Shown here in pieces: positions 26,882 through 52,940 of a stretch of 64,000 nucleotides of DNA. Position 1 is the stretch's first letter, and the number at the start of each line of letters is the position of its first letter. The DNA comes from Anaeramoeba ignava BMAN (Eukaryota; Protista; Anaeramoebae), in contig JAPDFW010000024.1 in assembly GCA_028826165.1 (NCBI GenBank), forward strand, positions 9,605-73,604, in the 5' to 3' direction. The translations under genes were made by a program, and so were the position numbers. Below the pieces are notes generated by a model that was given only the letters and a program-made list of their open reading frames with translations, searched no databases and had not been told where the DNA came from.

Positions 26882-26907
26882 CAGTCATTTTTATTTGGGT
26901 GCGGACA
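26882..26907 (+). repeat. Left terminal inverted repeat (26 bp)
   Basis: Exact reverse complement of 52915-52940; preceded by TA (26880-26881). Confidence 0.95.
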
Positions 26908-27146
26908 CCTTCCTTAAGGGACACTGGAAGACCTTCATGAAAAATTTTTAAAAAATTTTTAAAAAATTTTTAAAAAATCTTTAAAAATTTTTTAATGTTT
27001 CACGTGTTGAAATTCATCACTTCTATTTTCTATTCTGAATTTAATTCCCTGCATATAGTAGTTTATTTTCATTCTCATTTTGCATATTTTTTTCCCTTTT
27101 ATCATTTTCCTTTTTTCATCTTTCTTCAATTTTAAATGGAAAATAA

Positions 27147-30140
27147 ATAATAATTGATTTAATAAATATAAATAAATGTTTATTAAATACACTTCTTAAT
27201 CAATATCATTATATATTATTTATTGATTATTGATTTAATTTATTTTATTTATTGAAAATTATAAAATCATCCATTCATTTTGAAAAATTTAAAAGGGAAA
27301 AAATTGAAATAAAATTATATTAATATTTAAATAATAATTGATTTAATAAATATAAATAAATATTTATTAAATACACTTCTTAATCAATATCATTATATAT
27401 TATTTATTGATTATTGATTTCATTTATTTTATTTATTGAAAATTATAAAATCATCCATTCATTTTGAAAAATTTAAAAGGAAAAAATTGAAATAAAATTA
27501 TATTAATATTTAAATAATAAATGATTTAATAAATATAAATAAATGTTTATAAAATACACTTTTTAATCAATATCATTATATATTATTTATTGATTATTGA
27601 TTTATTTTATTTTATTTATTGAAAATTATAAAATCATCCATTCATTTTGAAAAATTTAAAAGGAAAAATTGAAATAAAATTACATTAATATTTAAATAAT
27701 AATTGATTTAATAAATATAAATAAATGCTTATAAAATACATTTTTAATCAATATCATTATATATTATTTATTGATTATTGATTTAATTTATTTTATTTAT
27801 TGAAAATTATAAAATCATCCATTCATTTTGAAAAATTTAAAAGGAAAAAATTGAAATAAAATTACATTAATATTTAAATAATAATTGATTTAATAAATAT
27901 AAATAAATATTTATAAAATACACTTCTTAATCAATATCATTATATATTATTTATTGATTATTGATTTCATTTATTTTATTTATTGAAAATTATAAAATCA
28001 TCCATTCATTTTGAAAAATTTAAAAGGAAAAAATTGAAATAAAATTACATTAATATTTAAATAATAATTGATTTAATAAATATAAATAAATATTTATTAA
28101 ATACACTTTTTAATCAATATCATTATATATTATTTATTGATTATTGATTTAATTTATTTTATTTATTGAAAATTATAAAATCATCCATTCATTTTGAAAA
28201 ATTTAAAAGGAAAAATTGAAATAAAATTATATTAATATTTAAATAATAATTGATTTAATAAATATAAATAAATGTTTATTAAATACACTTCTTAATCAAT
28301 ATCATTATATATTATTTATTGATTATTGATTTAATTTATTTTATTTATTGAAAATTATAAAATCATCCATTCATTTTGAAAAATTTAAAAGGAAAAATTG
28401 AAATAAAATTACATTAATATTTAAATAATAATTGATTTAATAAATATAAATAAATATTTATTAAATACACTTTTTAATCAATATCATTATATATTATTTA
28501 TTGATTATTGATTTAATTTATTTTATTTATTGAAAATTATAAAATCATCCATTCATTTTGAAAAATTTAAAAGGAAAAATTGAAATAAAATTATATTAAT
28601 ATTTAAATAATAATTGATTTAATAAATATAAATAAATATTTATTAAATACACTTCTTAATCAATATCATTATATATTATTTATTGATTATTGATTTATTT
28701 TATTTTATTTATTGAAAATTATAAAATCATCCATTCATTTTGAAAAATTTAAAAGGAAAAAATTGAAATAAAATTATATTAATATTTAAATAATAATTGA
28801 TTTAATAAATATAAATAAATGTTTATTAAATACACTTCTTAATCAATATCATTATATATTATTTATTGATTATTGATTTAATTTATTTTATTTATTGAAA
28901 ATTATAAAATCATCCATTCATTTTGAAAAATTTAAAAGGAAAAATTGTAATAAAATTATATTAATATTTAAATAATAATTGATTTAATAAATATAAATAA
29001 ATGTTTATAAAATACATTTTTAATCAATATCATTATATATTATTTATTGATTATTGATTTAATTTATTTTATTTATTGAAAATTATAAAATCATCCATTC
29101 ATTTTGAAAAATTTAAAAGGAAAAATTGAAATAAAATTATATTAATATTTAAATAATAATTGATTTAATAAATATAAATAAATATTTATTAAATACACTT
29201 CTTAATCAATATCATTATATATTATTTATTGATTATTGATTTAATTTATTTTATTTATTAAAAATTATAAAATCATCCATTCATTTTGAAAAATTTAAAA
29301 GGAAAAATTGAAATAAAATTACATTAATATTTAAATAATAATTGATTTAATAAATATAAATAAATGTTTATAAAATACACTTCTTAATCAATATCATTAT
29401 ATATTATTTATTGATTATTGATTTAATTTATTTTATTTATTGAAAATTATAAAATCATCCATTCATTTTGAAAAATTTAAAAGGAAAAATTGAAATAAAA
29501 TTATATTAATATTTAAATAATAATTGATTTAATAAATATAAATAAATATTTATAAAATACACTTCTTAATCAATATCATTATATATTATTTATTGATTAT
29601 TGATTTAATTTATTTTATTTATTGAAAATTATAAAATCATCCATTCATTTTGAAAAATTTAAAAGGAAAAATTGTAATAAAATTATATTAATATTTAAAT
29701 AATAATTGATTTAATAAATATAAATAAATGTTTATTAAATACACTTTTTAATCAATATCATTATATATTATTTATTGATTATTGATTTAATTTATTTTAT
29801 TTATTGAAAATTATAAAATCATCCATTCATTTTGAAAAATTTAAAAGGAAAAAATTGAAATAAAATTATATTAATATTTAAATAATAATTGATTTAATAA
29901 ATATAAATAAATATTTATAAAATACACTTCTTAATCAATATCATTATATATTATTTATTGATTATTGATTTAATTTATTTTATTTATTGAAAATTATAAA
30001 ATCATCCATTCATTTCGAAAAATTTAAAAGGAAAAAATTGAAATAAAATTATATTAATATTTAAATAATAAATGATTTAATAAATATAAATAAATGTTTA
30101 TAAAATACACTTCTTAATCAATATCATTATATATTATTTA
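27147..30140. repeat. ~182-bp satellite, ~16 near-identical copies, inside the giant element
   Basis: Marker AAATCATCCATTCATTTTGAAAAATTTAAAAGG recurs every 182-183 bp. Confidence 0.95.
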
Positions 30141-30895
30141 TTGATTTCATTAAGTGTATTTGCTTCATAACTCAATTTTTTTTCTTGTTTCTGAATACAG
30201 TAAATATTTTTCCAAAAGTTGATTTCCTGGAAACGCTCTATTAATATCTATATTATTCATTCCTATCAAATTGTGATTTGGAAAATTTTTTTGTTTTGTT
30301 TTTAATAAATTCTACTAGAAAGCAAAAATTTTTTTGTTTTTTCATTTTTGTGGATTTTTTTTTAATTCAAAATTCTAACAGAAAATAATCTATTTTTAGT
30401 TAAATATGTAATTGGTTTATCTGTCTAAATTTGTTTTTAGAGTAAAATTAAAGAAAAATTTCCCCTTTTTAATTCATTTCAATGGAAGGCAAAATTTTTT
30501 TTTTTCATTTTTTTTTTCATTTTTTTTTCATTTTTTATTTTTCATTTTTTTCTTTACTTTTTTTTTTCACTTAGTGAATTATTCTGATCAACTTTTTTGC
30601 AAATTTTATATTCAGCCTTTCCGATCTTGAAAGTATTTTTTCCAATTTATATTTGAATTTAACTTGATTTTGATTTTTTTTTGGATTTTTTGTTTTGAAT
30701 TTTTTTTTAATAACTATGAGGCCTCTTTTGCACAAAAATCACAGAACTGTTGTTGTTTTAGTTGCTCGTTCTTCTCGTAATTTTTTCATGAATTGGATCA
30801 ATTCACAAAACACAAAATAAAATATAACAATGTACAAATGAAACAAATTCTGAAAATTACTCAATTTATTTAACACTTAATATTTATATAATTTA

Positions 30896-33800
30896 ATGAC
30901 TTGAAGATTTATGGATTTTTTCACCGTATATTACAAGTATTTTTGGTTTGGTTATATGCTCATTTATAAGTTGTTTTATTTAGATAATATATATATTGAT
31001 TTATATGTTCGTTTATATGTTCATTTATATACTCGTTTATAAATTTATTTATTGGTTAGATTCTCGTTTCTATATTTATTGATATACTTATTTATATGTT
31101 CGTTTATCAATTTATTTATATTGTGGTTTATATGTTAGTTTATATATATAGGTTTTTTTTTTTGACTTTTGATTTTAAATATTGATTATAAATTTAATTA
31201 ACAATTTAATTAATAATTTAATTAATAATTTAATTAACAATTTAATTAATAATTTAATTAACAATTTAATCAATAATTTAATTAATAATTTAATTAATAA
31301 TTTAATTAATAATTTAATCAACAATTTAATTAATAATTTAATTAATAATTTAATTAATAATTTAATCAACAATTTAATTAATAATTTAATTAACAACTTG
31401 ATTAATAATTTAATCAACAATTTAATTAATAATTTAATTAATAATTTAATTAACAATTTAATAAACAATTTAATTAACAATTTAATTAATAATTTAATTA
31501 ATAATTTAATCAACAATTTAATTAATAATTTAATTAACAATTTAATTAATAATTTAATCAACAATTTAATCAATAATTTAATCAACAATTTAATTAATAA
31601 TTTAATTAATAATTTAATTAATAATTTAATTAATAATTTAATTAATAATTTAATTAACAATTTAATTAATAATTTAATTAATAATTTAATTAATAATTTA
31701 ATCAATAATTTAATTAACAATTTAATTTTAAATTTAATTAACAATTTAATAAACAATTTAATTAACAATTTAATTAATAATTTAATTAATAATTTAATTA
31801 ACAATTTAATTAATAATTTAATTAACAATTTAATTAATAATTTAATCAACAATTTAATTAATAATTTAATCAATAATTTAATTAATAATTTAATTAACAA
31901 TTTAATTAACAATTTAATTAACAATTTAATTAACAATTTAATTAACAATTTAATTAATAATTTAATTACTCAATTTAATTAATAATTTAACTAACAATTT
32001 AATTAACAATTTAATAAACAATTTAATCAATAATTTAACTAATAATTTAATTAATAATTTAATTAATAATTTAATTAACAATTTAATTAATAATTTAATT
32101 AATAATTTAATTAATAATTTAATTAACAATTTAATTAATAATTTAATTAACAATTTAATTAATAATTTAATTAATAATTTAATTAACAATTTAATTAATA
32201 ATTTAATCAATAATTTAATTAATAATTTAATTAACAATTTAATGACCTGAAGATTTATGGATTTTTTCACCGTATATTACAAGTATTTTTGGTTTGGTTA
32301 TATGCTCATTTATAAGTTGTTTTATTTAGATAATATATATATTGATTTATATGTTCGTTTATCTGTTCATTTATATACTCGTTTATAAATTTATTTATTG
32401 GTTAGATGCTTGTTTCTATATATATTGATATATTTATTTATATGTTCGTTTATCAATTTATTTATATGTTAGTTTATATTCCAGTTTATATATATATAGT
32501 TTTTTTTTTGACTTTTGATTTTAAATATTGATTATAAATTTAATTAACAATTTAATTAATAATTTAATTAATAATTTAATTAATAATTTAATTAATAATT
32601 TAATTAATAATTTAATTAATAATTTAATTAATAATTTAATTAATAATTTAATTAACAATTTAATTAACAATTTAATTAATAATTTAATTAATAATTTAAT
32701 CAATAATTTAATTAATAATTTAATTAATAATTTAATTAATAATTTAATTAATAATTTAATCAATAATTTAATCAACAATTTAATTAACAATTTAATTAAT
32801 AATTTAATTAATAATTTAATTAATAATTTAATTAATAATTTAATTAACAATTTAATTAACAATTTAATCAACAATTTAATTAATAATTTAATCAATAATT
32901 TAATTAATAATTTAATTAATAATTTAATAATTTAATTAATAATTTAATTAATAATTTAATTAATAATTTAATTAATAATTTAATTAACAATTTAATTAAT
33001 AATTTAATTAACAATTTAATTAATAATTTAATTTTAACTTAATTAATAATTTAATTAATAATTTAATTAATAATTTAATTAATAATTTAATTAATAATTT
33101 AATTAATAATTTTTTAATTAATAATTTAATAATTTAATTAATAATTTTAATTAATAATTTAATTATTAAATTTAATCAATAATTTTAATTAATAATTTAA
33201 TTAATAATTTAATTTTAATTAATTTAATTAATAATTTAATTAATAATTTAATTAATAATTTAATTAATAATTTAATTAACAAATTTTAATTAAACAATTT
33301 AATTAATAATTTAATTAACAATTTAATTAATAATTTTAATAATAATTTAATTAACAATTTAATTAATAATTTAATTAATAATTTAATCAATAATTTAATT
33401 AATAATTTATTAATAATTTAATTAACAATTTTAATTAACAATTTAATCAACAATTTTAATAATTTAAATTAATAATCAATAATTAATTTAATTAATAATT
33501 TAATCAATAATTTAATTAATAATTTAATTAATAATTTAATTAACAATTTTAATTTAATTAATAATTTAATTAATAATTTAATTAATAATTTAATTAATAA
33601 TTTAATTAATAATTTAATTAATAATTTAATTAATAATTTAATTAATAATTTTAATTAATAATTTAATTAACAATTTAATTAATAATTTAATTAACAATTT
33701 AATTAATAATTTAATTAATAATTTAATTAATAATTTAATTAATAATTTAATTAACAATTTAATTAATAATTTAATTAATAATTTAATTAATAATTTAATT

Positions 33801-36800
33801 AATAATTTAATTAATAATTTAATTAATAATTTAATTAATAATTTAATTAATAATTTAATTAATAATTTAATTAATAATTTAATCAATAATTTAATCAATA
33901 ATTTAATCAATAATTTAATGACCTGAAGATTTATGGATTTTTTCATCGTATATTACAAGTATTTTTGGTTTGGTTATATGCTCATTTATAAGTTGTTTTA
34001 TTTAGATAATATATATATTGATTTATATGTTCGTTTATATGTTCATTTATATACTCGTTTATAAATTTATTTATTGGTTAGATTCTCGTTTCTATATTTA
34101 TTGATATACTTATTTATATGTTCGTTTATCAATTTATTTATATGTTAGTTTATATTCCAGTTTATATATATAGTTTTTTTTTTTTGACTTTTGATTTTAA
34201 ATATTGATTAATAATTTAATCAATAACTTAATTAATAATTTAATTAACAATTTAATTAACAATTTAATTAATAATTTAATTAACAATTTAATCAATAATT
34301 TAATTAATAATTTAATTAATAATTTAATCAACAATTTAATCAATAATTTAATCAACAATTTAATCAACAATTTAATCAATAATTTTTAATTAACAATTTA
34401 ATTAACAATTTAATTAATAATTTAATTAATAATTTAATTAATAATTTAATTAATAATTTAATTAATAATTTAATTAATAATTTAATCAATAATTTAATTA
34501 ACAATTTAATTAACAATTTAATTAATAATTTAATTAATAATTTAATTAATAATTTAATTAATAATTTAATTAATAATTTAATTAATAATTTAATTAATAA
34601 TTTAATTAATAATTTAATTAATAATTTAATTTAATTAATAATTTAATTAATAATTTAATTAATAATTTAATTAATAATTTAATTAATAATTTAATTAATA
34701 ATTTAATTAATAATTTAATTAATAATTTAATTAATAATTTAATTAATAATTTAATTAATAATTTAATTAATAATTTAATTAATAATTTAATTAATAATTT
34801 AATGACCTGAAGATTTATGGATTTTTTCACCGTATATTACAAGTATTTTTGGTTTGGTTATATGCTCATTTATAAGTTGTTTTATTTAGATAATATATAT
34901 ATTGATTTATATGTTCGTTTATATGTTCATTTATATACTCGTTTATAAATTTATTTATTGGTTAGATTCTCGTTTCTATATTTATTGATATGGTTATTTA
35001 TATGTTCGTTTATATATATTGATTAGATGCTCGTTTCTATATTTATTGATATGGTTATTTATATTGTGGTTTATATGTTAGTTTATATATAATTTTTTTG
35101 AATTTTGAAATATTTTAGTTGAAATATTAATTAACAATTTAATTAACAATTTAATTAACAATTTAATTAACAATTTAATTAATAATTTAATCAACAATTT
35201 AATTAACAATTTAATTAATAATTTAATTAATAATTTAATTAATAATTTAATTAATAATTTAATCAACAATTTAATTAATAATTTAATTAACAATTTAATT
35301 AACAATTTAATCAATAATTTAATTAATAATTTAATTAATAATTTAATTAATAATTTAATTAATAATTTAATTAACAATTTAATCAATAATTTAATAATTA
35401 ATAATTTAATCAATATTTAATCAATAATTTAATTAATAATTTAATTAATAATTTTAATCAATAAATTTAATTAACAATTTAATTAATAATTTAATCAATA
35501 ATTTAATTAACAATTTAATTAACAATTTAATCAACAATTTAATTAACAATTTAATTAATAATTTAATCAACAATTTTAATCAATAATTTAATTAATAATT
35601 TAATTAATAATTTAATTAACAATTTAATTAATAATTTAATCAACAATTTAATTAATAATTTAATCAACAATTTTTTAATTTAATCAATAATTTAATTAAC
35701 AATTTAATTAACAACAAATTAATAATTTTAATCAAATTTAATTAATAATTTAATCAACAATTTAATTTAATTAACAATTTAACAAATAATCAATTTTAAT
35801 CAATAATTTAATTAACAATTTAATTAATAATTTAATTAACAATTTAATTAACAATTTAATTAATAATTTAATTAACAATTTAATCAATAATTTAATTAAT
35901 AATTTAATTAACAATTTAATTAATAATTTAATCAACAATTTAATTAATAATTTAATCAACAATTTAATTAATAATTTAATCAATAATTTAATTAATAATT
36001 TAATTAACAATTTAATTAATAATTTAATCAACAATTTAATTAACAATTTAATCAATAATTTAATTAACAATTTAATTAATAATTTAATCAATAATTTAAT
36101 TTAATTTAATTTAATTAATAATTTAATTAACAATTTAATTAACAATTTAATAAACAATTTAATTAATAATTTAATTACTCAATTTAATTAACAATTTAAT
36201 TAATAATTTAATCAATAATTTAATTAACAACTTAATTAACAATTTAATCAACAATTTAATTAACAATTTAATCAATAATTTAATTAATAATTTAATTAAT
36301 AATTTAATTAATAATTTAATTAACAATTTAATTAATAATTTAATTAATAATTTAATTAATAATTTAATCAATAATTTAATTAATAATTTAATTAATAATT
36401 TAATTAACAATTTAATTAATAATTTAATCAATAATTTAATTAACAATTTAATGACCTGAAGATTTATGGATTTTTTCACCGTATATTACAAGTATTTTTG
36501 GTTTGGTTATATGCTCATTTATAAGTTGTTTTATTTAGATAATATATATATTGATTTATATGTTCGTTTATCTGTTCATTTATATACTCGTTTATAAATT
36601 TATTTATTGGTTAGATGTTCGTTTCTATATTTATTGATATGCTTATTTATATGTTCGTTTATCAATTTATTTATATGTTAGTTTATATTCCAGTTTATAT
36701 ATATAGTTTTTTTTTGACTTTTGATTTTAAATATTGATTAATAATTTAATCAATAACTTAATTAATAATTTAATTAATAATTTAATTAACAATTTAATTA

Positions 36801-39800
36801 ATAATTTAATTAACAATTTAATCAATAATTTAATTAATAATTTAATTAACAATTTAATCAATAATTTAATTAATAATTTAATTAACAATTTAATTAACAA
36901 TTTAATTAATAATTTAATCAACAATTTAATTAACAATTTAATCAATAATTTAATTAACAATTTAATTAACAATTTAATTAACAATTTAATTAATAATTTA
37001 ATTAATACTTTAATTAACAATTTAATTAATAATTTAATTAACAATTTAATCAATAATTTAATTAATAATTTAATTAATAATTTAATCAATAATTTAATTA
37101 ACAATTTAATCAATAATTTAATTAATAATTTAATTAATAATTTAATCAATAATTTAATTAACAATTTAATTAATAATTTAATTAATAATTTAATTAACAA
37201 TTTAATCAATAATTTAATTAACAATTTAATCAATAATTTAATTAATAATTTAATTAATAATTTAATTAATAATTTAATTAATAATTTAATCAATAATTTA
37301 ATTAATAATTTAATTAATAATTTAATTAATAATTTAATCAACAATTTAATCAACAATTTAATTAACAATTTAATTAACAATTTAATTAACAATTTAATTA
37401 ACAATTTAATTAACAATTTAATCAATAATTTAATTAACAATTTAATTAATAATTTAATTAATAATTTAATTAACAATTTAATTAACAATTTAATTAACAA
37501 TTTAATTAACAATTTAATTAACAATTTAATTAATAATTTAATTAATAATTTAATTAATAATTTAATTAATAATTTAATTAATAATTTAATAACTTGAAGA
37601 TTTATGGATTTTTTCACCGTATATTACAAGTATTTTTGGTTTGGTTATATGCTCATTTATAAGTTGTTTTATTTAGATAATATATATATTGATTTATATG
37701 TTCGTTTATCTGTTCATTTATATACTCGTTTATAAATTTATTTATTGGTTAGATTCTCGTTTCTATATTTATTGATATGCTTATTTATATGTTCGTTTAT
37801 CAATTTATTTATATGTTAGTTTATATTCCAGTTTATATATATATAGTTTTTTTTTTTGACTTTTGATTTTAAATATTGATTATAAATTTAATCAATAACT
37901 TAATTAATAACTTAATTAATAATTTAATTAATAATTTAATTAACAATTTAATTAACAATTTAATTAACAATTTAATTAACAATTTAATTAACAATTTAAT
38001 TAACAATTTAATTAACAATTTAATTAACAATTTAATCAATAATTTAATTAATAATTTAATTAATAATTTAATTAATAATTTAATCAATAATTTAATTAAC
38101 AATTTAATTAATAATTTAATTAACAATTTAATTAACAATTTAATCAATAATTTAATTAACAATTTAATCAACAATTTAATTAATAATTTAATTAATAATT
38201 TAATTAACAATTTAATTAATAATTTAATTAATAATTTAATTAACAACTTAATCAATAATTTAATTAACAATTTAATTAACAATTTAATTAACAATTTAAT
38301 TAATAATTTAATTAATAATTTAATTAACAATTTAATTAATAATTTAATTAATAATTTAATTAATAATTTAATGACCTGAAGATTTATGGATTTTTTCACC
38401 GTATATTACAAGTATTTTTGGTTTGGTTATATGCTCATTTATAAGTTGTTTTATTTAGATAATATATATATATATTGATTTATATGTTCGTTTATATGTT
38501 CATTTATATACTCGTTTATAAATTTATTTATTGGTTAGATGTTCGTTTCTATATTTATTGATATACTTATTTATATGTTCGTTTATCAATTTATTTATAT
38601 GTTAGTTTATATTCCAGTTTATATATATATAGTTTTTTTTTGACTTTTGATTTTAAATATTGATTATAAATTTAATCAATAACTTAATTAATAATTTAAT
38701 TAATAATTTAATTAACAATTTAATTAACAATTTAATTAACAATTTAATTAACAATTTAATTAACAATTTAATTAATAATTTAATTAACAATTTAATTAAC
38801 AATTTAATCAACAATTTAATTAATAATTTAATCAACAATTTAATTAACAATTTAATTAATAATTTAATTAATAATTTAATTAACAATTTAATTAACAATT
38901 TAATTAATAATTTAATTAACAATTTAATTAATAATTTAATTAATAATTTAATTAACAATTTAATTAATAATTTAATTAATAATTTAATTAACAATTTAAT
39001 TAACAATTTAATTAATAATTTAATTAACAATTTAATCAATAATTTAATTAATAATTTAATTAACAATTTAATTAACAATTTAATTAACAATTTAATTAAT
39101 AATTTAATTAACAATTTAATTAACAATTTAATTAACAATTTAATTAATAATTTAATTAATAATTTAATTAACAATTTAATTAACAATTTAATTAACAATT
39201 TAATTTAAATAATTTTTAATTAATAATTTAATTAATAATTTAATTAATAATTTAATTAATAATTTAATTATTAATTTAATTAACAATTTTAATTTAATTA
39301 ATTTAATTAACAATTTAATTAACAATTTAATTAACAATTTAATTAACAATTTAATTAACAATTTAATTAATAATTTAATTAACAATTTAATCAATAATTT
39401 AATTAACAATTTAATTAACAATTTAATTAATAATTTAATTAACAACTTAATTAATAATTTAATTAATAATTTAATTAATAATTTAATTAATAATTTAATC
39501 AACAATTTAATTAATAATTTAATTAACAATTTAATTAATAATTTAATTAATAATTTAATTAACAATTTAATTAACAATTTAATTAACAATTTAATTAACA
39601 ATTTAATTAATAATTTAATTAATAATTTAATTAATAATTTAATCAACAATTTAATTAATAATTTAATGACCTGAAGATTTATGAATTTTTTCACCGTATA
39701 TTACAAGTATTTTTGGTTTGGTTATATGCTCATTTATAAGTTGTTTTATTTAGATAATATATATATATATTGATTTATATGTTCGTTTATATGTTCATTT

Positions 39801-41030
39801 ATATACTCGTTTATAAATTTATTTATTGGTTAGATTCTCGTTTCTATATTTATTGATATGGTTATTTATATGTTCGTTTATCAATTTATTTATATGTTAG
39901 TTTATATTCCAGTTTATATATATAGTTTTTTTTTTGACTTTTGATTTTAAATATTGATTATAAATTTAATCAATAACTTAATTAATAATTTAATTAATAA
40001 TTTAATTAATAATTTAATTAACAATTTAATTAACAATTTAATTAACAATTTAATTAACAATTTAATTAACAATTTAATTAATAATTTAATCAACAATTTA
40101 ATTAATAATTTAATTAACAATTTAATTAATAATTTAATTAACAATTTAATTAATAATTTAATTAACAATTTAATTAATAATTTAATTAACAATTTAATTA
40201 ATAATTTAATTAATAATTTAATTAACAATTTAATCAACAATTTAATTAACAATTTAATTAATAATTTAATTAACAATTTAATTAATAATTTAATTAACAA
40301 TTTAATTAACAATTTAATTAATAATTTAATTAACAATTTAATCAACAATTTAATTAATAATTTAATTAATAATTTAATTAATAATTTAATTAATAATTTA
40401 ATTAATAATTTAATTAACAATTTAATTAATAATTTAATTAATAATTTAATTAACAATTTAATTAATAATTTAATTAACAATTTAATTAATAATTTAATTA
40501 ATAATTTAATTAACAATTTAATGACTTGAAGATTTATGGATTTTTTCACCGTATATTACAAGTATTTTTGGTTTGGTTATATGCTCATTTATAAGTTGTT
40601 TTATTTAGATAATATATATATATATATTGATTTATATGTTCGTTTATATGTTCATTTATATACTCGTTTATAAATTTATTTATTGGTTAGATTCTCGTTT
40701 CTATATTTATTGATATGGTTATTTATATGTTCGTTTATATATATTGATTAGATGCTCGTTTCTATATTTATTGATATGGCTATTTATATTGTGGTTTATA
40801 TGTTAGTTTATATATAATTTTTTTGAATTTTGAAATATTTTAGTTGAAATATTAATTAATAATTTAATCAACAATTTAATTAATAATTTAATTAATAATT
40901 TAATTAATAATTTAATTAATAATTTAATTAATAATTTAATCAATAATTTAATTAATAATTTAATTAACAATTTAATTAATAATTTAATTAATAATTTAAT
41001 TAATAATTTAATTAACAATTTAATTAATAA
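30896..41030. repeat. Composite array: nine conserved ~290-330-bp modules alternating with variable-length tracts of 12-bp AATTTAATYAAY
   Basis: Module start ATGACCTGAAGATTTATGGATTTTTTCACCGTATATTACAAG (with minor variants) at 30896, 32242, 33918, 34802, 36451, 37589, 38371, 39666 and 40521. The 12-mer tracts between them are ~0.18-1.4 kb. Confidence 0.95.
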
Positions 41031-41618
41031 TCAAATCAAAAAAATATTAAACGAAATAATTTTTTTTATTTCCGGCATATTTTCCCAAAAAATTAAAAAA
41101 TAATAAAAATTTTTTTTTGTTTTGAAGGGAACCCACAAGTTATTATTATTATTATTATTACTATTACTATTACCATTACTAATATGTTTCGAATCTCCTC
41201 GACTCTATTTGGATTGTATATTTGGAAGTGGAAGGTGGAAATTTTGATCTAGAATATAGCTAAGTGTGATAATGATGTTTAAAATCAAAAAATTATATAA
41301 TATTTATAGAAAATATACAAATAAGATGAGATAAATGAAAAAGAAATAATTTTAATTTTAAATTTTTAAATAAATTTTAATTTTCAAAAAAAATTATTTA
41401 ATAAAAAAAACTTGACAAAAATATTCTTCTTTTTAATTTTATTTTCTTTTTTGTTTCAAGATAAAAATCAACCAAAAAAATGAATGAAAAAAAAATTGAA
41501 TAAAAATGAAAATTGGAATCTTAATTTGAAATTCAACTGAAATTCCAATTTTCATTTGAAATGAAAAAAAAATTAAAAAAAAATTAATTTTTGAAAAAAA
41601 AAAAGATTTTTCTTTTTC

Positions 41619-43145
41619 CTAATTAGAATCGTCAGAACGTTTTGTGGAATCAATAATTCCTGAAGAATCACTATTAGATGATAAAGAGGAATCAGAATAA
41701 TGTTCATCATTTGCTTTTTCTGGTGAATTATAACTATTAGACTCGGATGAGTTCTCCTCCAAAAATAAATTTGAATTTGAATTTTGCTTTGAATTTCGAG
41801 ATTTTTTCTTAAATTTGTTTTTTTTTGAATTTTTTTGTCTTAAAGCTCCTTTTTTTCTTTTTATTCTTTTTTGACTTGAATTTGAATTTGATTTTGAATT
41901 TGATTTTGAATTTGATTTTGAATTTGATTTTGAATTTGGTTTTGAATTTGGTTTTGAATTTGGTTTTGAATTTGGTTTTGAATTTGGTTTTGAATTTGAT
42001 TTTGAATTTGATTTTGAATTTGGTTTTGAATTTGATTTTGATTTTGAATTTGAATTTGAATTTGATTTTGAATTTGATTTTGAATTTGGTTTTGAATTTG
42101 ATTTTGATTTTGATTTTCGTTTCATATTTTGTTCATTTTGAAGATTCAATAACCGTTGAGAAAGCAACGGTTTATTGCTCATCTCTTCCTTTTGTAAATT
42201 TATTAATCTTTTATGAATTTCTTTTTTGTTTTTACTTTTAGAAAAAATCTTATTTTTTTTTTTGAATTTTTTTGTTGTATTCTTCAATCGCTTTTGATTC
42301 GATATTCTTGTTCTAGTAGCATTCCACTTATCAATTTCTCCTTTAATTGTTTCTTCAAGATTTTTTTTATTTGAATGCTTCATGCACATACTATATGCGT
42401 ATTTCCTTTTTTCTGCTGATTGTACATTCCTTACACAACTTTTGTAAATATGATAAGTCGAATTTGCCTTCATTTCGAGTATCGGAACACAGTTTTTTGC
42501 ATGATTTTTTTCTTGGGCCCCACCACAAAGGCTACAAATCCTTTTTGTTGTTTGTTGTTGTGGTTGATTTTGTGTTGTTTTATTTTTTGTTGTTTGTTTT
42601 TTTTTTTTTGGTTTTTTTTTTTTTTGTTTTTTTTTTCTTGCATTTTGATCAATAGATTCATTATCAGATTTTGAATTTGAATTTGAATTTGAATTTGAAT
42701 TTGATTTTGATTTTGATTTTGATTTTGAATTTGAATTTGAATTTGAATTTGAATTTGAATTTGAATTTGAATTTGGTTTTGAATTTGATTTTGAATTTGA
42801 ATTTGAATTTGATTTTGATTTTGATTTTGATTTTGAATTTGAATTTGATTTTGATTTTGAATTTGAATTTGATTTTGAATTTGATTTTGATTTTGATTTT
42901 GAATTTGAATTTGATTTTGATTTTGAATTTGATTTTGATTTTGAATTTGATTTTGATTTTGAATTTGATTTTGAAATTGAAATTGAATTTGGAATTGAAT
43001 TTGGAATTGAATTTGAAAAATCACTTTGCTCTGTGTTCATGTTGAGTTTATTCTTTGTTGAAGAAATGTGGGGGGATTTTTCTTGATCTTTGGGAAATGA
43101 AAAAAGAAAAAAAAATAATTTTATTAAACACTTGTTTTGGGGCAT
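41619..43145 (-). CDS. Basic, S/N/K-rich low-complexity protein with a CxxC-H-C zinc-knuckle-like motif (transposon cargo)
   Basis: 508-aa ORF with a non-repetitive core containing CSLCGGAQEKNHAKNC, and K-rich NLS-like runs. The true start may be MNTEQ at 43040. Confidence 0.7.
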   Translation of the reverse strand: MPQNKCLIKLFFFLFSFPKDQEKSPHISSTKNKLNMNTEQSDFSNSIPNSIPNSISISKSNSKSKSNSKSKSNSKSKSNSNSKSKSKSNSKSNSNSKSKSNSNSKSKSKSKSNSNSNSKSNSKPNSNSNSNSNSNSNSNSKSKSKSKSNSNSNSNSNSKSDNESIDQNARKKKQKKKKPKKKKQTTKNKTTQNQPQQQTTKRICSLCGGAQEKNHAKNCVPILEMKANSTYHIYKSCVRNVQSAEKRKYAYSMCMKHSNKKNLEETIKGEIDKWNATRTRISNQKRLKNTTKKFKKKNKIFSKSKNKKEIHKRLINLQKEEMSNKPLLSQRLLNLQNEQNMKRKSKSKSNSKPNSKSNSKSNSNSNSKSKSNSKPNSKSNSKSNSKPNSKPNSKPNSKPNSKPNSKSNSKSNSKSNSKSNSNSSQKRIKRKKGALRQKNSKKNKFKKKSRNSKQNSNSNLFLEENSSESNSYNSPEKANDEHYSDSSLSSNSDSSGIIDSTKRSDDSN

Positions 43146-43196
43146 TCCCCTTTGGCGATTATTTATTTTTAATTTTGGTTTTTAAAAATTCAATTA

Positions 43197-44435
43197 TTAT
43201 TTTCCAATTTTGGATTTAATTTCAATATCTTAAATTTTATTATTAATCAAAAAGTAATTTTATTGAAAAAAAAATGTTACATTCTTGAAAACTATTCAAT
43301 TCATATGGATAAGGCGAATTCTCGAATTCATCTCCACTATATACCGAATCAAAACTATCTGAAGAATCGAAAACTACAACTTCCTCTTGAATTTGATTGA
43401 AGTTTTCATGTTTAATTTGTAACGGAATTAAACATTCAATAAGATTTGAATTTTCACTTTCACTTTGATATTCAATTTGATTTTGATTTTGATTATTTTC
43501 ATTTTCACTTTGATATTCAATTTCATTTTCACTTTTATATTCAATTTCATTTTCACTTTGATATTCATTTTCATTTTTATTTTCATTTTGATTTTGATTA
43601 TTTTCATTTTCAGTTTGATATTCAGTTTGATTTTGATTTTGAATTTGAATTTGATTTTGATTTTCATTTTGATTTTGATTTTGATTTTGATATTCAATTT
43701 CAATTTGATTTTGAATTTGAATTTGAATTTGATTTTGATTTTGATTGTCAATTTCAATTCGGTTTTCATTTTCATTTTGATATTCAATTTCAATTTGATT
43801 TTCATTTTGATTTTGATTTTCAATTTCAATTTGATTTTCAATTTCAATTTCATTTTCATTTTCATTTTCAATTTCAATTTCATTTTCATTTTCATTTTCA
43901 ATTTCAATTTCAATTTCATTTTCATTTTCAATTTCAATTTGATTTTGATTTTGATCATTTCCATTTTCAATTTCAATTTGATTTTGATTTTGATCATTTC
44001 CATTTTCATTTCCATTTTCATTTTCTTTTTGTTTTTTTTCACTCCTATTGGCTACAAGAAAAAATTTTAGATTTTTTGAGAAATAAAAAAGTAAGATTTT
44101 TTTTAATTATATTTATTAGATAAAAATATACAGATTTTGTTTATATCATAAAGTATATTATTGATATTCAAATTAGGGAAGGATTGAGAAATTTTTTTAA
44201 GCAGATTTTTGTGTATGAACTTTCCAAGGGAAGAAATTGCCCAAGAGTAGACATGCGGTGAAATATATTCTTTTTTGGTCATTTCTTTAAGAATTTCTAA
44301 AATTTCTCCAATATTTTCTATTTTGATATTTGGTGAGACAATTTTTGAAGAAATCAAAAATAACGAACAGATTTCTTCACTTTTTTCCAATTGATTTAAA
44401 TGCTGTAATATTTCTTCAATTTTTTTATTTTCCAT
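43197..44435 (-). CDS. Acidic E/N/Q/I-repeat hypothetical protein, 3 predicted exons (44435-44132, 44051-43281, 43228-43197)
   Basis: The 110-aa ORF joins in phase 1 across a GT..AG intron (44131-44052) to an ATG-less open frame reading SNRSEKKQKENENGNENGNDQNQ...QEEVVVFDSSDSFDSVYSGDEFENSPYPYEL. A second GT..AG intron (43280-43229) leads to a stop. Confidence 0.6.
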
Positions 44436-44499
44436 TTTTTAAAAAGAAAAGAAAGAAGAGAAAAATTTAGAAAAAATCCAAAAAAAATAAAAAAGAAAA

Positions 44500-44810
44500 A
44501 TAAAAATCCAAAAATATTTTTATTATAAATTTTAATTTAAAATTGAATAAGTGATCCAAATAAAAAAGAAAAACAAAAAATCCAAAAATATTTTTATTTT
44601 AAATTTTAATTTAAAATTGAATAAGTGATCCAAATAAAAAAGAAAAACAAAAAATCCAAAAAAATTTTTATTTTAAATTTTAATTTAAAATTGAATAAGT
44701 GATCCAAATAAAATAAAAAAGAAAAAAAATAAAAATCCAAAAAAATTGTTATTTTAAATTTTAATTTAAAATTGAATTTAAAATTGAATAAGTGATCCAA
44801 ATAAAAGAAA
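44500..44810. repeat. Four direct repeats with core AAATTGAATAAGTGATCCAAATAAAA (~74-93-bp spacing)
   Basis: GTGATCCAAA at ~44551, 44625, 44699 and 44792, between the transposase stop and the next gene start. Confidence 0.85.
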
Positions 44811-44851
44811 ATTAAAAAGAGAAAATGAAAAATAAATTAAAATGAATCATT

Positions 44852-46042
44852 TTAATCTGTTCTGGAATCATTTTGATCCAAATCTGCTAAATATGGGTAA
44901 TCTTCCTTAAAAAAATTGAATGCATATTGCTTCTCATTGAATTGATCAAATAATAGAGACCAAGTTTCCAAAGGCTGATCAATAAAATCTTGTGTATAAT
45001 TCTTCAAATTTCGTTTGATCACGCCGAAAGCCATTTCTATTGGATTCAATTCTGGCGAATATGGAGGTAAATAAAAAAACAAAACCCCTTTTTCACTTAA
45101 TAAAAATCGAAGATCGTTATCAATTCCGTGATGAACAGCACAGTTATCTAGGATTAGAACCATATTTGAACGAAGAACAGGTACTAATGAATTTTCAATA
45201 AAATGTAAAAAACAAAGTGAATTAACGGATCTCTGAAAATGATCAACAACAAGAAATCCTTGAGAGCAAAAAGCACATATCGAATTGATTCGATGCTTTT
45301 TATCTCTTGATAGAAAACTACCAAATATATTAGAGCCTTTTTGTGACCATGCATCTGTTCTAGATGCTTTATTTAAATTGACTCCCGTCTCATCTAGAAA
45401 AATTACAGAATCAGCTCCATAAGTAATAAAGATATTATGCATAAGATCAATAAAAGCAAGTTTCAACATCTGATTTTCTTGAGTGAACTTTCTAGGGCTC
45501 CTAAGAGACATCTTCTTTTTAGAGAATCCAAGTTCTGAAGAGATGAATTTATGAAGGGTCGAAATTGAAACGTCAATTTGATATGTGTGGATTAATTTAT
45601 CTTTGATCTCTCTTAAAAAAATTGTAGGAGTCAACTTTAGCTCCTTTTTGATGATTTTTCCTTCATGCTGTGAGATTTTTTTAATTGATGTTTTTTTTTT
45701 CTTATTTTTTTGATCTATCAATATTGTCGTTTCAATCACAGAATTATAAAAAATGACACATAAATGATGTTCATCATTAATTTCGTCAGATCCTTTTGTT
45801 AATCTAATCAATGTTTGTATTAAATAATTCTTTAGTTTACAGATATATGTTTTTCCTTTTTTAAACTCCTTTGCCATTGCTCTAACTGAAGGAATATCGT
45901 CACCTAAAAGCAAGTATATTAAAATATATTCTGCCAACTCAAATAATATGTCAATAACAATAAGAGGATCATATGCCCTTCCTTTGAAAAAACGTCCTTT
46001 GTTTTGATTGGTTTTGAAATTATCAAAATTTAAATTGCTCAT
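44852..46042 (-). CDS. IS630/Tc1-family DDE transposase (DD36E), intact, 396 aa
   Basis: N-terminal GRAY motif and HTH (SVRAMAKEFKKGKTYI); second HTH (IFLREIKDKL..VSISTLHKFISSELGFSKKK); catalytic VIFLDETG, LILDNCAVHH and LPPYSPELNPIE. Hand count gives 36 residues between the second D and the E. Confidence 0.95.
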   Translation of the reverse strand: MSNLNFDNFKTNQNKGRFFKGRAYDPLIVIDILFELAEYILIYLLLGDDIPSVRAMAKEFKKGKTYICKLKNYLIQTLIRLTKGSDEINDEHHLCVIFYNSVIETTILIDQKNKKKKTSIKKISQHEGKIIKKELKLTPTIFLREIKDKLIHTYQIDVSISTLHKFISSELGFSKKKMSLRSPRKFTQENQMLKLAFIDLMHNIFITYGADSVIFLDETGVNLNKASRTDAWSQKGSNIFGSFLSRDKKHRINSICAFCSQGFLVVDHFQRSVNSLCFLHFIENSLVPVLRSNMVLILDNCAVHHGIDNDLRFLLSEKGVLFFYLPPYSPELNPIEMAFGVIKRNLKNYTQDFIDQPLETWSLLFDQFNEKQYAFNFFKEDYPYLADLDQNDSRTD

Positions 46043-46329
46043 CTTATAAAAAAATCAAAAAATGAAAAAAAAAGATTAAAAAGAAATAAAAAAATGAAAA
46101 AAAAAATGAAAAAAAAAAAATTAAAAAAAATGAAAAAAAAAATTATTTTTTTCATTATAGTGTATATTAATGTATATATATCTTATAAAATGAGGATAAA
46201 AGAAAAATGTTGAATAGAATTTCGAAAATTATATTTAATTTGGTTTGATTTGATTTATTTGAAAAAAAAAGGTCAATTTAAAATTGAGATTTTCTTATAT
46301 TTTTTTTTAAATAGAAACCAAATAAATTC

Positions 46330-47610
46330 AGGAATTAACATCTCTCAAATTATCAATTTTGATTTCATTGATAACAATTTTGGAGATTGTGTTTTGTGAG
46401 AAGAAGAAAAAAAAAGAGAAAGTAAATTTATCTTTGTTTTGTTTTGTTTTGTTTTGTTGTTTTTTATTGAAACGGATTTTCTCATGAAAATCCTCCAGCA
46501 TGATTCTGGTTTGTAATATCAAAAGAAAAGAAAAGAAAAGAAAAGAAAAGAAAAGAAAAAAGAGAAAAAAAAAAAATGAACGAAATCTATCTTTGATTTC
46601 AAAATTTTTTCAATAATTGTGAATTTGATTCCGTTTATCAAGGTTATTCCTTGTGAAATTTTTTTTTCTGAATTAATTTTTTGGATTTTTCATTCCATTT
46701 TTTGATTTGTTTTTCTGATCTTTTTATTTATCATTCTGTTTCTGATTATTTTGGTGGGAGTTTTCATATTGTTGTTTGTAAATTGTTCTTCTAATTCTTT
46801 ATTTTATGGAGTTGGTTTTGTTCTACAAATCTTCAGTTTTCTTCATCTCTAAGAATGTTATTATCTGCTTATGTAAATAATAATATCATTTCAAACATAT
46901 TATGGATTAATTCTTTTTTTTTTTAGGATATATTTTTCTTCTAACTATTACTTTTATTAGTTGTTTTTCATACTTGAATCGAATAAATAGCTTTTCTGAT
47001 TTCATTTCTGGGATGGTTATATGTTGAAAATTTATCAAGAAAAAGAACGATTTCTTCTCTTTGGTTCTAAAAATTGAAAGTATCTTGGATTTTGTTGTTT
47101 CAAATATTTTTTCTGTTTTATTTGTATTTCCCTGATTTCAAATCAGATATTCTTTATTCATTATAATTTTTTGTTAGCTTTCCTAAACAAAATAAATTTT
47201 TAAAACCATTTCAAATCATGCTTTTTATCATATTTGATGAATTCGTTCTATTTCATTTGTTCCTATTATCATAATTCTTGGATCTAAAAATCCTTCTGAG
47301 TTTTTTTTTTTTGAATGGTTTAGTTTCTTTGTTTTAGAGAATGAGTTTTTGCATGATTTATTTGGAATGATTGGAGAAACTTTTAGATTTCTGATGAACA
47401 ACTTTTCCTTCGTATCAGAACTGATTTATCTGCTTGACTTTTTTTTTATCTTCATATTTGAAATTCCGCATTTAGTGTATAGGAGTTTTCCATTAGATAT
47501 TATCATAATATTTGTTATTATGTGTCTCGTTATTTATTTTCTTATCTTTTAGTTATCTTTGATAAGATTGAAAACACTATTTTAGATGATGATATTTTCT
47601 GGAGTTTCCT
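46330..47610 (-). pseudogene. Possible decayed gene remnant inside the element
   Basis: Non-repetitive sequence with coding-like composition, but only short interrupted frames and no recognisable motif. Confidence 0.25.
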
Positions 47611-47612
47611 GT

Positions 47613-47831
<219 letters not shown>

Positions 47832-48196
47832 ATTTAGAAGAAAAAGAAATTATTTTATTTTTTTTTCCTTCTTTTTGGAAGTCATTTCAAAAATGATCAA
47901 ATGGGGTAATCCTCAGGTATATGCAGATTCCCTATTTATTGCCTAAATCAGATAATTTCGATTTTGAAACCTTTTGAAATAATCACAGGATATTAGAGAG
48001 AAGGGAATCATTTTTCACAAGAATATTTTCAAGACAAAAAACCAAATGAAACAGTGAAAGAAAAAAAAAGAAGAATTACTTATAGAGGAACCAAAGTTGC
48101 TGTCTCCTTAAGAAAAAAGAAAAAGAAATCAAAAATCAAATGAAATGATTTCAAGTTTGTTGATTTTTCCAATTATTCAAAAAAAAAATTGAATCT

Positions 48197-51140
48197 TTAA
48201 TAATTTCTGTGATAAAAAAGAAATTGAATATCTTCTGAAAATTTAAATGGATTTTGCAAAATAGGTTGATATCCATCATTAAACTCCCACCAAGTTCTAT
48301 CCATTTCTCTTTTACAAAAAGAAAAAAAATGAGCAAAATCTTCCTTTTTTTGATGAAAAATAATTCCAAATAAAGAATAAGTTGGATTTTCAAGAGGATC
48401 TTGTAAAAATGAAGATAAATCAAGAAATTCATTAGGAATAATTGCAAGAGAGTTTTTGAAGTTTACTTTTTTGATTGGATCATATTCTAACCTTTTGAAA
48501 TAAATAACAAGAATTTCTGGAATTTTGGAAATTTTAAAAGAATGAAATGATGCATTTTGTTCATCGCATTTAGAACAAATCCAAGCATTTTCTCCTATCA
48601 TCAAAGATGGTGTAAAATAAATCTCAAGAAGTTGATTTGAAGATATATTCTTTTGTTTAATCAAAGCAATATCTAAACATTGAAATTCATTTCTGAAATT
48701 GATTTGTTCTCCACAATCATCACAAGTAATAGTTATGAAAAATTCTCCTTGAAACATATTACAAATTGACATATTTTGATTCCCCTTTTCTAATTCTTCT
48801 TGTGTAAGATCTGGATCTTCAAGAAAATCTTTTGTTTCTTGTTGAATCATTTCAATTAAACTCATTAATAATTCCATTTCATCTTGAGGTCTAAAATTAT
48901 TCCATTTTTCATTTTTTTTCTGCTAAAGCATCATGAAGAAAACGTAAATCGAAATGATTGTTTGAAGTTTTGAGCATTGTTTCTAAAATAATTGTAATAA
49001 ATCCAATTCCATTTAATTGTGAAAAATTAGTTCTTATCAAACATTGAAGAATTGAAGCAAGATAACAACTATTTCCAATATTAGGAATTACTCGAAAATT
49101 CTAAAAAAAAAGGTTTGAAATATTAAATATGAAATATTAAATATTAAATATTGGATTGAATCCATTTCAAAAATCAAAAAAAATCAAGATTTTTACTTTA
49201 TCAAAAAATGTTCTATCATAGCTTAGAATTTCTTTAGGAAATTTGATAGATTTGCCAATTTCAATTTTCTTTTCCTTTTTTTCTACTTCAATCAAATTTA
49301 GTTTTTGTTTTTGTTTTAATTTGGAAAGTTGATTCTGATTTAGAAAATTGAGAGGTTGAGATATTGATTTGAGATTTAAGAGTTTTTGATTTGAATTGTT
49401 TTTGATTTTGTTTTTTTTATTCATTTCTCCTTGTTGTTTTGATTGTGAAATATCTATGTTTTTTCTTTTTTTTTGAGAATTTGTTTGAGATCTTGTTGAA
49501 TTTTTCTCATTTGGAATATTCTCGTTATTAGGAATAACTTTTTTTGTTCTTAATAATTTGGGGAATTTAATTCTTTTGTTTGTATCATCCAAAAAATCAT
49601 GTAAAATAATTGAATTATCAGTGAAAATGAAATGATGTTGGTTGTGAAGAAGTGGAATTTTTGGAACATTTTGAATTACTTGAGATTTATCAACTTCAAT
49701 AATTATTGGATAAGTTCTTTGTAGTTTTTGAAGAAAAAAGAAAAGATCTAAAATGGAACAGATTTGAGAAACTGATACTTTTTGTCTTGAAATATTCCCA
49801 AAATGGGAATCAGCTAAATTTCTTCCATGATATGATTCAAAATAAACAAGTTCAATTTCTTGAAATAAAGAATGAAATAAATCATAAATTATAATAGGAA
49901 CTTGATTATTTTTGAGGTGTCTTCCTCCATCACTAAAAAAAACAACTCTTCTTCTTTGAGTAAATTCTTTTGTTTCAAATTGATATTCAAGAAAATTTTT
50001 CAAATAACGCAAAGCAGATATAACATAATATTGATCCTAATTAAAATAAATTAAATTTTATTGTTTTGTGTTTTTTTTTTGAAAATAGATAACATTTTAT
50101 TGTTATTTTTGTTGATTAAAAAACAATCAAAAAACCTTATGTGAATCTTCTGAGATAAAATCAATATAAGATAATGAATCACCACTTAGAGTAGAATTAA
50201 ATAACCTCCATGATTTCCTTTTATACCATTGTTCTGTTGTCCAATAATCTTGCTTTTGTTGTATATTCATAGCAAAATCTAAAACAATAATCAAAGTATC
50301 AGGATCATTTTTACAACTTTGAAAATAATTTCTAATATTCTTGATATATTGAAGATGATTAATTGGAATAGGATTTTGAGCACATATTCCACATTCAAAA
50401 AATCTTGATTTTCCACATTTTAAAAGAAAAAATTTATTAGAAATGAAGCAGAATTGTTCATAAGATATTCTTGTTGGTTCTTCTTTTTCATTTTCATTTT
50501 CATTTTCATTTTCATTTTCATTTTCATTTGCTTTGGTTAAAGGAGTTCTAAAATTCATGTGAGTTTGACTTGAAAAAAAATCTAAACAACAAGTATCTTC
50601 TAAAAGATTATTAATTATTTCAATTTTGATTAAAAAATCTTCTCCTATTTGTTCCATTACTAAATCTCGATGTGTTTTTATCTTTTTAGAACTATTCAAA
50701 TGATGAAATTTTGAGTTCAAATGTCTTTCCACTTTTTTTTTTGAAGATGGATGAAATTGAAGATCACATATTTTACATAAAACTTCATTTGATTCATCTT
50801 TTCTATCTAAACAAGGGCATGTTTCAATAAATTCTTTCAAACTTTCTTGAGGTTGTTTTTTCTTTGTAAAAGAAGAAATTCCTTCCAAATGTAAAACAGG
50901 TCTTTCATTTTCTTTTTCAATTTGAGAATTTTCTAAAGAAACTAATCCTTTAAAAATTTGAAATCCATCTTCATTTAAAATGAGAATTTTTTGATTGTTT
51001 TCAAAATAGAAAATTTTTGAAATTTGGATTGATTGATCAAAATAAGAACTTATTTTTGATTTGAGATTTTCTAAATTTGGATAAGAAGATAAATTTAAAA
51101 GATTTGATTGATTTTCAAAAATAATTTTGCAAATTTCCAT
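48197..51140 (-). CDS. Zn-finger + Sola-like DDD transposase + USP (peptidase C19) deubiquitinase fusion, ~915 aa, 3 exons (51140-50136, 50036-49197, 49100-48197); one +1 frameshift in an A8 run at ~48912-48919
   Basis: Phase-0 GT..AG introns 50135-50037 and 49196-49101 join the ORFs in frame. Motifs: CKIC..VERHLNSKFH zinc finger; LDFAMN, FFSDGGRHLKN and YFESYHGRNLADSHFG (D-D-D); USP Cys box IPNIGNSCYLASILQCL, PQDEMELL, and His box YSLFGIIFHQKKEDFAHF..WWEFND. Confidence 0.82.
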
Positions 51141-51699
51141 CAAAATAAAAAAAACAATTTCAAAAGAAAAAAAAAAGAAAAGAAGTAAGAAAAATGAAAG
51201 GAATTTTTTTTCAAATTTCTTTTTTAAATGGGAATTCTCATTATCTCAAAAATGTGAAGAAAAAATGAGAATAATCTTTTTTTTTCCAATAAGTTGTCAT
51301 TTATGATCCTTATTTGTTTTAATTAAATTTTTAATTGTTTTGTTTTTGAAATTCTTTTTGATCTTTTTAATAAAATTGAATTAAGAAAACAATTCAAAGA
51401 AAGAATAAGAAATTCTCTTTAAAAAACAAAGAAATAAATTAGTTCATCAAAAATAAAAAAATTGATTCAAATCTTAAAATAAGAATTTAATTTAATTTAA
51501 TTTAGAAATATTTTCTACAATAAATGAATTCAAAATGGAAATTTAAATAAAATTATTTGTCTAAAATTGAATTTTTCTATTTACAATCAAGAAAGAAAAA
51601 CAAATCAAAAAACAATAAAAAAAAATATTAAAAAAAAAATTTGAACTTGAGGACGAAGAGGATTTTGGGGATTTTTTGTTTGTTCATTTTCTCGCGTCG

Positions 51700-52520
51700 C
51701 TATTCACTCACATTTTATTATTCATTATATAAATCATACTCTGATTCATTTGACTCAGAAGATAAACCAGAATTAGATTCAAGAGATTTAGATAATAATG
51801 ACTACGAAGAATCCCCTCACGAAACTGAATGATGAACTGAAATCAAAATATCTTAATATTGAGTAAGTATTCTCCTTTCTGGTTTAGTTTTTAATAACCT
51901 AATTTACAAGTGATATCTGGAGTATTTGCCTGGAGAAATTCCTTAAAATAAAACAAAAAAAAAACAAGAATTTTGTTTCAAATCAATTCGAAACATTATT
52001 TCAGGAGAATACTTGAAATTTAATGGAAGAAAATGGAGATGATTCAAATCATGAAGAAAAAAAAGAAGAAGATCTTCATTTGGATTAAAGTTTGATGAGT
52101 AATTTCCAAATCAGAAAAAATAATTTTCAAAAAGGAAAAAAGAGATGTGATTGAAAAAAAAAATTAATCAGTTGTAAGTAGAAATAGAATGAAAATAAGG
52201 ATTTTTTTTTTGGAAAACCACTAAAATTCTTGATCAATTCATGATAAAAGGAAAAAAGTGGTTTTTTATTTGTTCACAAGTGTTATAATAAAATGAAATC
52301 GAATAAAAAAAAGCAGAAATCAAAAAAGAAATAATGAAATTTAATAAGTAAGAAATTACAAATAGAAAAAATCAACCAATTTTACAATTATATTCCAGAA
52401 AATTGAAAAGAAAAAAATGGGAAACAACTCAAGTCGACAGAAATGAGAAAAGAGTGAATTCAATAGTGATTGTAAAAGAAATTGAAAATTTTTGGAGCGA
52501 AAAATAAAAATTTTAGGAAT
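51700..52520 (+). pseudogene. Possible decayed gene remnant (acidic N-terminal fragment)
   Basis: SDSFDSEDKPELDSRDLDNNDYEESPHETE followed by stop-interrupted, purine-rich, coding-like sequence. Confidence 0.3.
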
Positions 52521-52914
52521 AAGAATGAATTATTAATTAAATAGATTTAATTTAATATAAATAAAAGAAACAGTATTCAAAGATATATTCTTAATTGTGT
52601 ATATTCAGAAGTCAATATGAGCTTGAGAATAAAAAAAAAATTCCTTAAGGATTTGACTGGGAAAAATCACTTGTGGGTTTGATCAATAATTAAAAGGAAG
52701 AGACAATGAAAAAAATTCAGAACTCTGAGTCTAGAAGTTTTTGATATCTAATATGTCTTAATTATTATTAAAAAAAAAGAAAGAAAAAGACCAATTAAAT
52801 TGGGTTGATTTTCGGACATTTCAAAAAAATAAAAAAAAAATGAAATAAAAATGAAAAAAAAATGAAAATTTTTTAAAAATTTTTTAAAAAATTTTTAAAA
52901 AATTTTTAAAAAAA

Positions 52915-52940
52915 TGTCCGCACCCAAATAAAAATGACTG
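52915..52940 (-). repeat. Right terminal inverted repeat (26 bp)
   Basis: Exact reverse complement of 26882-26907; followed by TA (52941-52942). Confidence 0.95.

Follow-up and report, generated by a model that had tools for sequence, protein, structure and literature searches.

The gene examined here most probably belongs to one copy of a Sola2-like (DD39D) cut-and-paste transposon whose transposase carries a USP/C19 domain at its C-terminus. We put the probability of this reading at about 0.82, a figure that covers the identity of the element and the fusion only, the substrate of the USP domain lying outside it. The copy occupies positions 47996..51709 (minus strand, ~3714 bp, ends inferred, target-site duplication (TSD) eroded) of the window, by which we mean the whole 64,000-nucleotide stretch of Anaeramoeba ignava BMAN contig JAPDFW010000024.1 that was analysed (contig C26 of the 42.8-Mb, 147-contig assembly). 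Within an A. ignava clade of such elements it is a single-copy, diverged and probably inactive member. The first-pass annotation of this DNA had described the gene but overlooked that it belongs to a transposon present in many copies and bounded by termini of its own.

The gene in the window and its USP exon, broken as assembled

The gene is read from the minus strand in three exons. Exon 1 (50136..51140, 335 aa) encodes the N-terminal region with a C2H2-type zinc finger (50777-50703, assigned from the motif alone), a CxxC..H motif and the first catalytic Asp, and it aligns to the transposase family profile with an E value of 4e-17 (hhalign). Exon 2 (49197..50036, 280 aa; E value of 1e-22 against the same profile) provides the second and third catalytic Asp in the DD39D spacing, followed from around position 49556 by a basic low-complexity linker. 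Intron 1 (50135-50037, 99 nt) falls within the catalytic domain and intron 2 (49196-49101, 96 nt) directly upstream of the USP Cys box. Both had been proposed as phase 0 GT-AG introns and the sequence bears this out, as it does the claim that all three Asp are present, their codons being located at 50279, 49931 and 49811. Exons 1 and 2 are uninterrupted reading frames.

The same annotation had joined these exons to the USP in one frame of ~915 aa, but exon 3 has only 63 codons before a stop, and what remains of the USP lies in another frame. The first piece of exon 3 (48912..49100, 63 aa, minus strand) contains the USP Cys box (Pfam UCH, E 8e-5). At the break (48909..48919), a run of eight A residues (A8, 48919-48912) is followed by TGA (48911-48909). 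The second piece (48197..48919, 240 aa, minus strand; Pfam UCH, E 4e-22) contains the QD box, the CxxC pairs of the fingers, the His box and the Asn-Asp. All the Cys, His and ND motifs attributed to the USP could therefore be located (Cys 49067, His 48331, Asn/Asp 48280/48277), but the His and ND motifs are out of frame with the Cys box. The His box is also the most deviant among the USP lineages described below and does not have the glycines that precede the His. The assembled product is 678 aa long, with the TGA preceding the USP catalytic His, and the window copy as assembled would make a transposase without a functional USP.

In an alignment with intact sibling copies the two USP pieces adjoin without a gap, which is more easily explained by a 1-nt indel in the A8 run than by an additional intron. 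The most plausible intron spanning the break was rejected: it would remove the conserved QD box, and the sibling alignment shows no gap. We judge that the frame break is more probably a genuine mutation than an assembly artifact, because the locus is unique and the element ends are eroded. The other reading, that the assembly slipped in the A8 run and the window copy encodes an intact fusion of ~916 aa, is a sizeable if lesser possibility. The assembly derives from Nanopore R9 sequencing, with polishing by Racon, Nanopolish and Pilon (PMC11550330), the A8 break is the sole lesion in ~2.75 kb of coding sequence, and some of the 1-nt indels in sibling copies also fall in runs of at least 5. However, short-read polishing should have succeeded at a unique locus, the ends and TSD of this copy are eroded too, and many sibling indels lie outside long runs, so that genuine decay is common in the family. 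For experimental work the intact siblings are useful test objects and the window copy itself a poor one.

A multi-copy family with its own ends and target

The exons of the window copy were searched one by one against the genome, and NCBI models of sibling copies were used for whole-domain work. A search for homologues of the same architecture had been suggested in the first-pass annotation; exon 1, exon 2 and the USP were found in the same order at at least 13 other sites, in four further lineages. Lineage A is represented on C1, C24, C59, C80, C105 and C128 (95-99% DNA identity) and lineage B on C48, C90, C93, C96 and by a second copy on C105. The third is a single copy on C40, and the fourth is the C67 copy, which is cut off past the USP Cys box and has lost most of the USP. 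The window copy forms a fifth lineage, with 23-43% domain identity to the others, and its locus has no DNA-level twin in the genome. DNA matches on C79, C81 and C89 were considered as further copies and discarded, being low-complexity only, with the gene absent. The gene models of C1 and C24 (905 aa each) and C40 (923 aa) are intact, and the remaining sibling copies checked contain small indels or stops. A sibling-copy protein is present in NCBI (KAJ5079105.1, Anaeramoeba ignava), where it is annotated merely as “ubiquitin carboxyl-terminal hydrolase.”

Intron 1 is found at the identical codon in lineages A and B, in the C40 copy and in the window copy, and the gene model for C40 at NCBI removes it identically. 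Intron 2 lies just upstream of the Cys box in lineages A and B, in C67 and in the window copy. It is missing in C40, where one open frame of 570 aa holds the last two catalytic Asp together with the entire USP. This single open frame establishes the fusion without reliance on splicing at the intron 2 junction, and the fusion is a family-level trait in A. ignava. The single gene of the elements encodes a zinc finger, an RNase H-like DDD core, a basic linker and a compact USP.

The sibling elements start with GAG(A/T)GA and finish with TC(A/T)CTC, their GAG(A/T)GA terminal inverted repeats (TIRs) being short and imperfect. They have ATAT on both sides and unrelated flanks, and this holds at each end even for near-identical copies (95-99%). 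Many are inserted in tandem repeats, which provide the empty site: when the element and one ATAT were removed, 6 of 8 copies gave back the uninterrupted tandem repeat, with 4 bp as the only duplication length that fits. The sequences show that elements of 3.4-4.6 kb insert at ATAT and duplicate it. Lineage A elements measure 3.65-3.79 kb, lineage B elements 3.42-3.51 kb and the C40 element 4.6 kb. Small (<4.7 kb) and recently active, the elements of this clade each have one gene, and both their termini and their target are defined.

An end profile was made from 11 sibling or relative ends, leaving out the window copy, and scanned over the 64 kb. Position 47996 ranked first, and with the TSD taken into account 51709 scored best on the upstream side of the gene. 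The probable 3' terminus (47996..48007, minus strand), which ends in CTTCTCTC, has the top score in the window, is followed by TAATAT in place of ATAT, and resembles the right end of subfamily B. The probable 5' terminus (51698..51709, minus strand), GAGTGAAT, is preceded by ATGT in place of ATAT; it has moderate support, is present as a single copy in the genome and is less certain than the 3' end. TIRs, target duplication and dispersed copies are all found in the siblings, and the window copy has recognizable ends with an eroded TSD. A GC-rich, partly palindromic non-coding motif at 47850-47940 shows 73% similarity to a stretch that follows the C67 copy (L025:494-403), in the opposite orientation relative to the gene.

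Sequence searches of Pfam and PDB did not recognize the transposase. With a profile, 1083 relatives were retrieved, and in an alignment of the cores of 105 of them D306 and D389 are invariant and D429 is conserved in at least 90%; within A. ignava, 39 residues separate the second Asp from the third. For the core of the C40 sibling, the AlphaFold model (pLDDT 92) places the three Asp on a strand, a strand and a helix, as in RNase H folds, and the window exons align to the profile of this family. The RNase H-like DDD/E fold that had been expected of the middle domain is therefore the one predicted for this sibling. Metnase matched the model best (Z 12.3, rmsd 2.9, 166 aligned), followed by Mos1 (Z 12.0). 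The resemblance to mariner is confined to the fold: exons 1 and 2 gave no Pfam DDE_3 match and the duplication is ATAT, which argues against a Tc1/mariner (IS630) assignment.

Sola elements, as described by Bao in 2009, are reportedly characterized by a DDD triad, a 4-bp TSD and GAG ends. The Sola2 group has 5'-GRG termini, and the Sola3 group duplicates a TTAA target. The DD39D triad and the ATAT of the empty sites agree with this definition of Sola. All ends are GAG, in line with the GRG of Sola2, a feature that does not by itself distinguish Sola2 from Sola3. A Sola3 assignment fails on the target, ATAT and not TTAA, and on the motifs, which are also unlike those of Sola3-1_HM. DUF7869, presumably a Sola-linked domain, was matched by 14 of the 99 relatives scanned. 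One 744-aa database protein combines an N-terminal tyrosine-recombinase match with a C-terminal Sola-like fragment and is probably the product of nested elements read as one gene.

Compared by eye, the motif order DFxxN, ISxD-x-x-H-D, F(S/T)DG..KN, FF..(Y/S)HG of the family looks nearer to Sola2-1_HM than to Sola1-1_AP or Sola3-1_HM (PMC3985635 supplement), with clear departures. At the place of EIQSYHW..HP in Sola2-1_HM the family consensus reads E..FY..LG, and it ends in CDxHFG. In contrast to Sola2, the A. ignava elements also have the C-terminal USP and a strict ATAT target, and they may constitute a lineage distinct from the Sola2 of animals. We would class them as Sola2-like and not as members of Sola2, on motifs compared by eye and on the expected ends and TSD. 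The Sola-like DDD transposase fused to a USP, as first annotated, is upheld by the predicted fold, by the TIRs and 4-bp TSD of a family with many copies, and by the unspliced fusion in C40.

Conservation, origin and possible role of the USP domain

The sibling USPs match Pfam UCH with E values of 3e-37 to 5e-22, and the Cys and His are retained in all four full-length USP lineages. The fusion USP shares the Cys, QD and His boxes and the zinc sites of the fingers with USP/C19 enzymes. Among solved structures the best matches were USP8, USP15, USP2 and USP21 (profile E value of 1e-39 to USP8), and the Atlas model has a TM score of 0.80-0.83 to USP clusters. The fusion USP differs in being compact (~300 aa), in being without accessory domains and in its ~25% identity to most full-length USP matches. 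A comparison of lineage A with lineage B gives 40% identity for the USP (pN 0.39, pS 0.65), similar to the transposase core (41-49%) and above the linker (26%). These values support, without proving, purifying selection on the USP, with pS near saturation and the estimate correspondingly rough.

Among the best 150 of the 1083 transposase relatives, the USP Cys box was present in just three A. ignava proteins, in agreement with Pfam for the 99 relatives scanned. No USP was seen at 24 metagenomic loci examined, some of them on short contigs. Several of these loci are complete elements of 2.6-2.8 kb with identical ATAT/GAG..CTC ends; complete, intronless elements without a USP were noted at L053, L056, L057, L058, L064 and L076. 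A relative on C142 (L052:1795-5301) is intronless, encodes 1168 aa without a USP and has a zinc knuckle at the end. In a quick tree of exon 2 the USP-bearing lineages form one clade (SH-aLRT 94, just below the threshold of the tool). In the USP tree the fusion USPs lie on one side of a weak branch (74/91) with long branches, and the ten best genomic matches of the C40 USP after itself are its siblings. The phylogenetic evidence thus supports, short of proof, a single capture of the USP in the ancestor of the five lineages. As to the donor, a sequence search with the USP returned generic eukaryotic USPs at ~25% identity, and language-model features point toward giant-virus USPs. We take a viral donor as a lead that the USP tree does not settle. 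A word-based homolog search matched the A. ignava protein only, and no related transposase was found in the viral contigs searched.

DDD cores bind two metals and cut and join DNA, and the Cys-His-Asp/Asn site of USPs hydrolyzes ubiquitin isopeptide bonds. From this known chemistry we infer that the USP domain is an active deubiquitinase. The fusion would place the protease at the transpososome, where the tethered USP would strip ubiquitin from the transposase itself or from the transpososome. The deubiquitinated complex would then evade proteasomal or p97 clearance long enough for excision and insertion, and the USP may in this way be a means to evade host control. Such cis-protection of the transposase or the DNA-bound complex is our lead mechanism, held tentatively at somewhat short of even odds.

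An alternative that we hold unlikely, but not by far, is that the USP has its substrates among host factors near the cut (histone H2A/H2B, PCNA, repair factors) and steers repair or keeps the chromatin of the element open. The fusion brings the enzyme to DNA ends, and a reading of this kind has been proposed for OTU and Ulp1 fusions (PMC2836005). It is weakened by the fact that the comparisons made did not link the domain to any USP family directed at histones and that the domain has no accessory domains such as zf-UBP. There is only a slim chance that the working transposase stops before the USP, which would then be cargo, either passive or expressed separately. The USP-less relatives transpose with identical ends and the C67 copy has lost most of its USP, as cargo would allow, but C40 has neither intron nor stop between the domains, and the USP is constrained across lineages that are just 22-40% identical. 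Together with these natural USP-less relatives, the clade would permit a direct test of the role of the catalytic Cys in transposition.

The enclosing element and other transposase-protease fusions

The copy lies within a 26-kb Tc1/IS630-like element (26882..52940), which hosts the Sola insertion and is not part of the Sola element. It is bounded by perfect 25-bp TIRs flanked by TA, and this inverted repeat pair (26882, 52940) is the sole such pair in the genome. Its DDE_3 (Tc1/IS630) transposase (44852..46042, minus strand; Pfam DDE_3, E 3e-27) has four relatives of 36-45% identity, on C36, C51, C40 and C146, and giant elements of this type may constitute a family. On C101, AT-drifted relatives of the DNA around the copy join ~51970 to ~47600 and are without the stretch between. 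This fits a nested insertion of the Sola copy in the 26-kb element, although the C101 match is at just 64-75% and the missing stretch exceeds the Sola element. It is very improbable that the gene is instead a fixed second gene of a composite Tc1-like element or a domesticated host gene, for although a perfect TIR pair encloses it, its DNA occurs once in the genome and a clean TSD is missing, it has its own GAG..CTC ends, its siblings move independently with their own TSD, and the C101 relatives are without ~51970-47600.

Several other features of this neighborhood were noted. The C101 relatives correspond to window positions 52781-51971 and 47851-46133 and occur in tandem units ~16.5 kb apart, in which most G and C have been replaced by A or T; this could reflect hypermutation on repeats. 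In the Tc1-like element, an ORF at 44103-44435 (110 aa) has a weak death-effector-domain match (E 0.001, below the cut-off), and another at 41619-43145 (508 aa, Ser/Lys/Asn-rich) has a small Cys-rich island, CxxC..H..C, and no Pfam match. Dispersed tandem repeats of ~320 bp and 173 bp occur at 52941-54232 and 15300-21100; the siblings are frequently inserted in such repeats, and the 173-bp repeat also borders the C40 copy. A BTB/POZ-domain gene (59292-60284, Pfam E 3e-5) lies outside both elements.

A second, independent transposase-USP fusion is present in this genome. On C134, an 865-aa ORF (C134:50522-53116; L079:22-2616) combines a Harbinger-type DDE_Tnp_4 with a USP Cys box, and the remainder of the USP follows in a different frame past a repeat tract. 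Two unrelated fusions in one genome point to a recurring pressure. It could be speculated, although we doubt it on balance, that Anaeramoeba curbs transposases by ubiquitin-dependent destruction and that the Sola2-like clade and the C134 Harbinger independently gained a deubiquitinase as a cis counter-defence, the Sola USP possibly from a giant virus.

A literature search, which did not reach the founding Sola description and other key papers, returned no report of a Sola-USP fusion. A C19 domain on a transposase, which the first-pass annotation had thought unprecedented, has been described before: the Trichomonas vaginalis protein XP_001314237.1 combines an IS5-like transposase_11 with peptidase C19, and a role for ubiquitin in transposition was already proposed (PMC2836005). 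This protein likewise joins a C19/USP and a DDE transposase in an anaerobic protist, but its transposase belongs to an unrelated superfamily, and what was reported is one protein record rather than a family whose ends are defined. The same source describes Ginger1 transposases with a C-terminal OTU or Ulp1 and lists Mutator with Ulp1 and Helitron with OTU; why transposons repeatedly acquire ubiquitin or SUMO proteases has been a question since at least 2010 (PMC2836005). Like the A. ignava elements, these are DNA transposons with a cysteine protease that removes ubiquitin or SUMO, and Ginger1 further shares the position of the protease at the transposase C-terminus and the presence of introns. 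They differ from the A. ignava element in the protease families, OTU and Ulp1, and in their transposase superfamilies. The Sola-type transposase with a USP is thus a new pairing of known parts and not a new kind of system.
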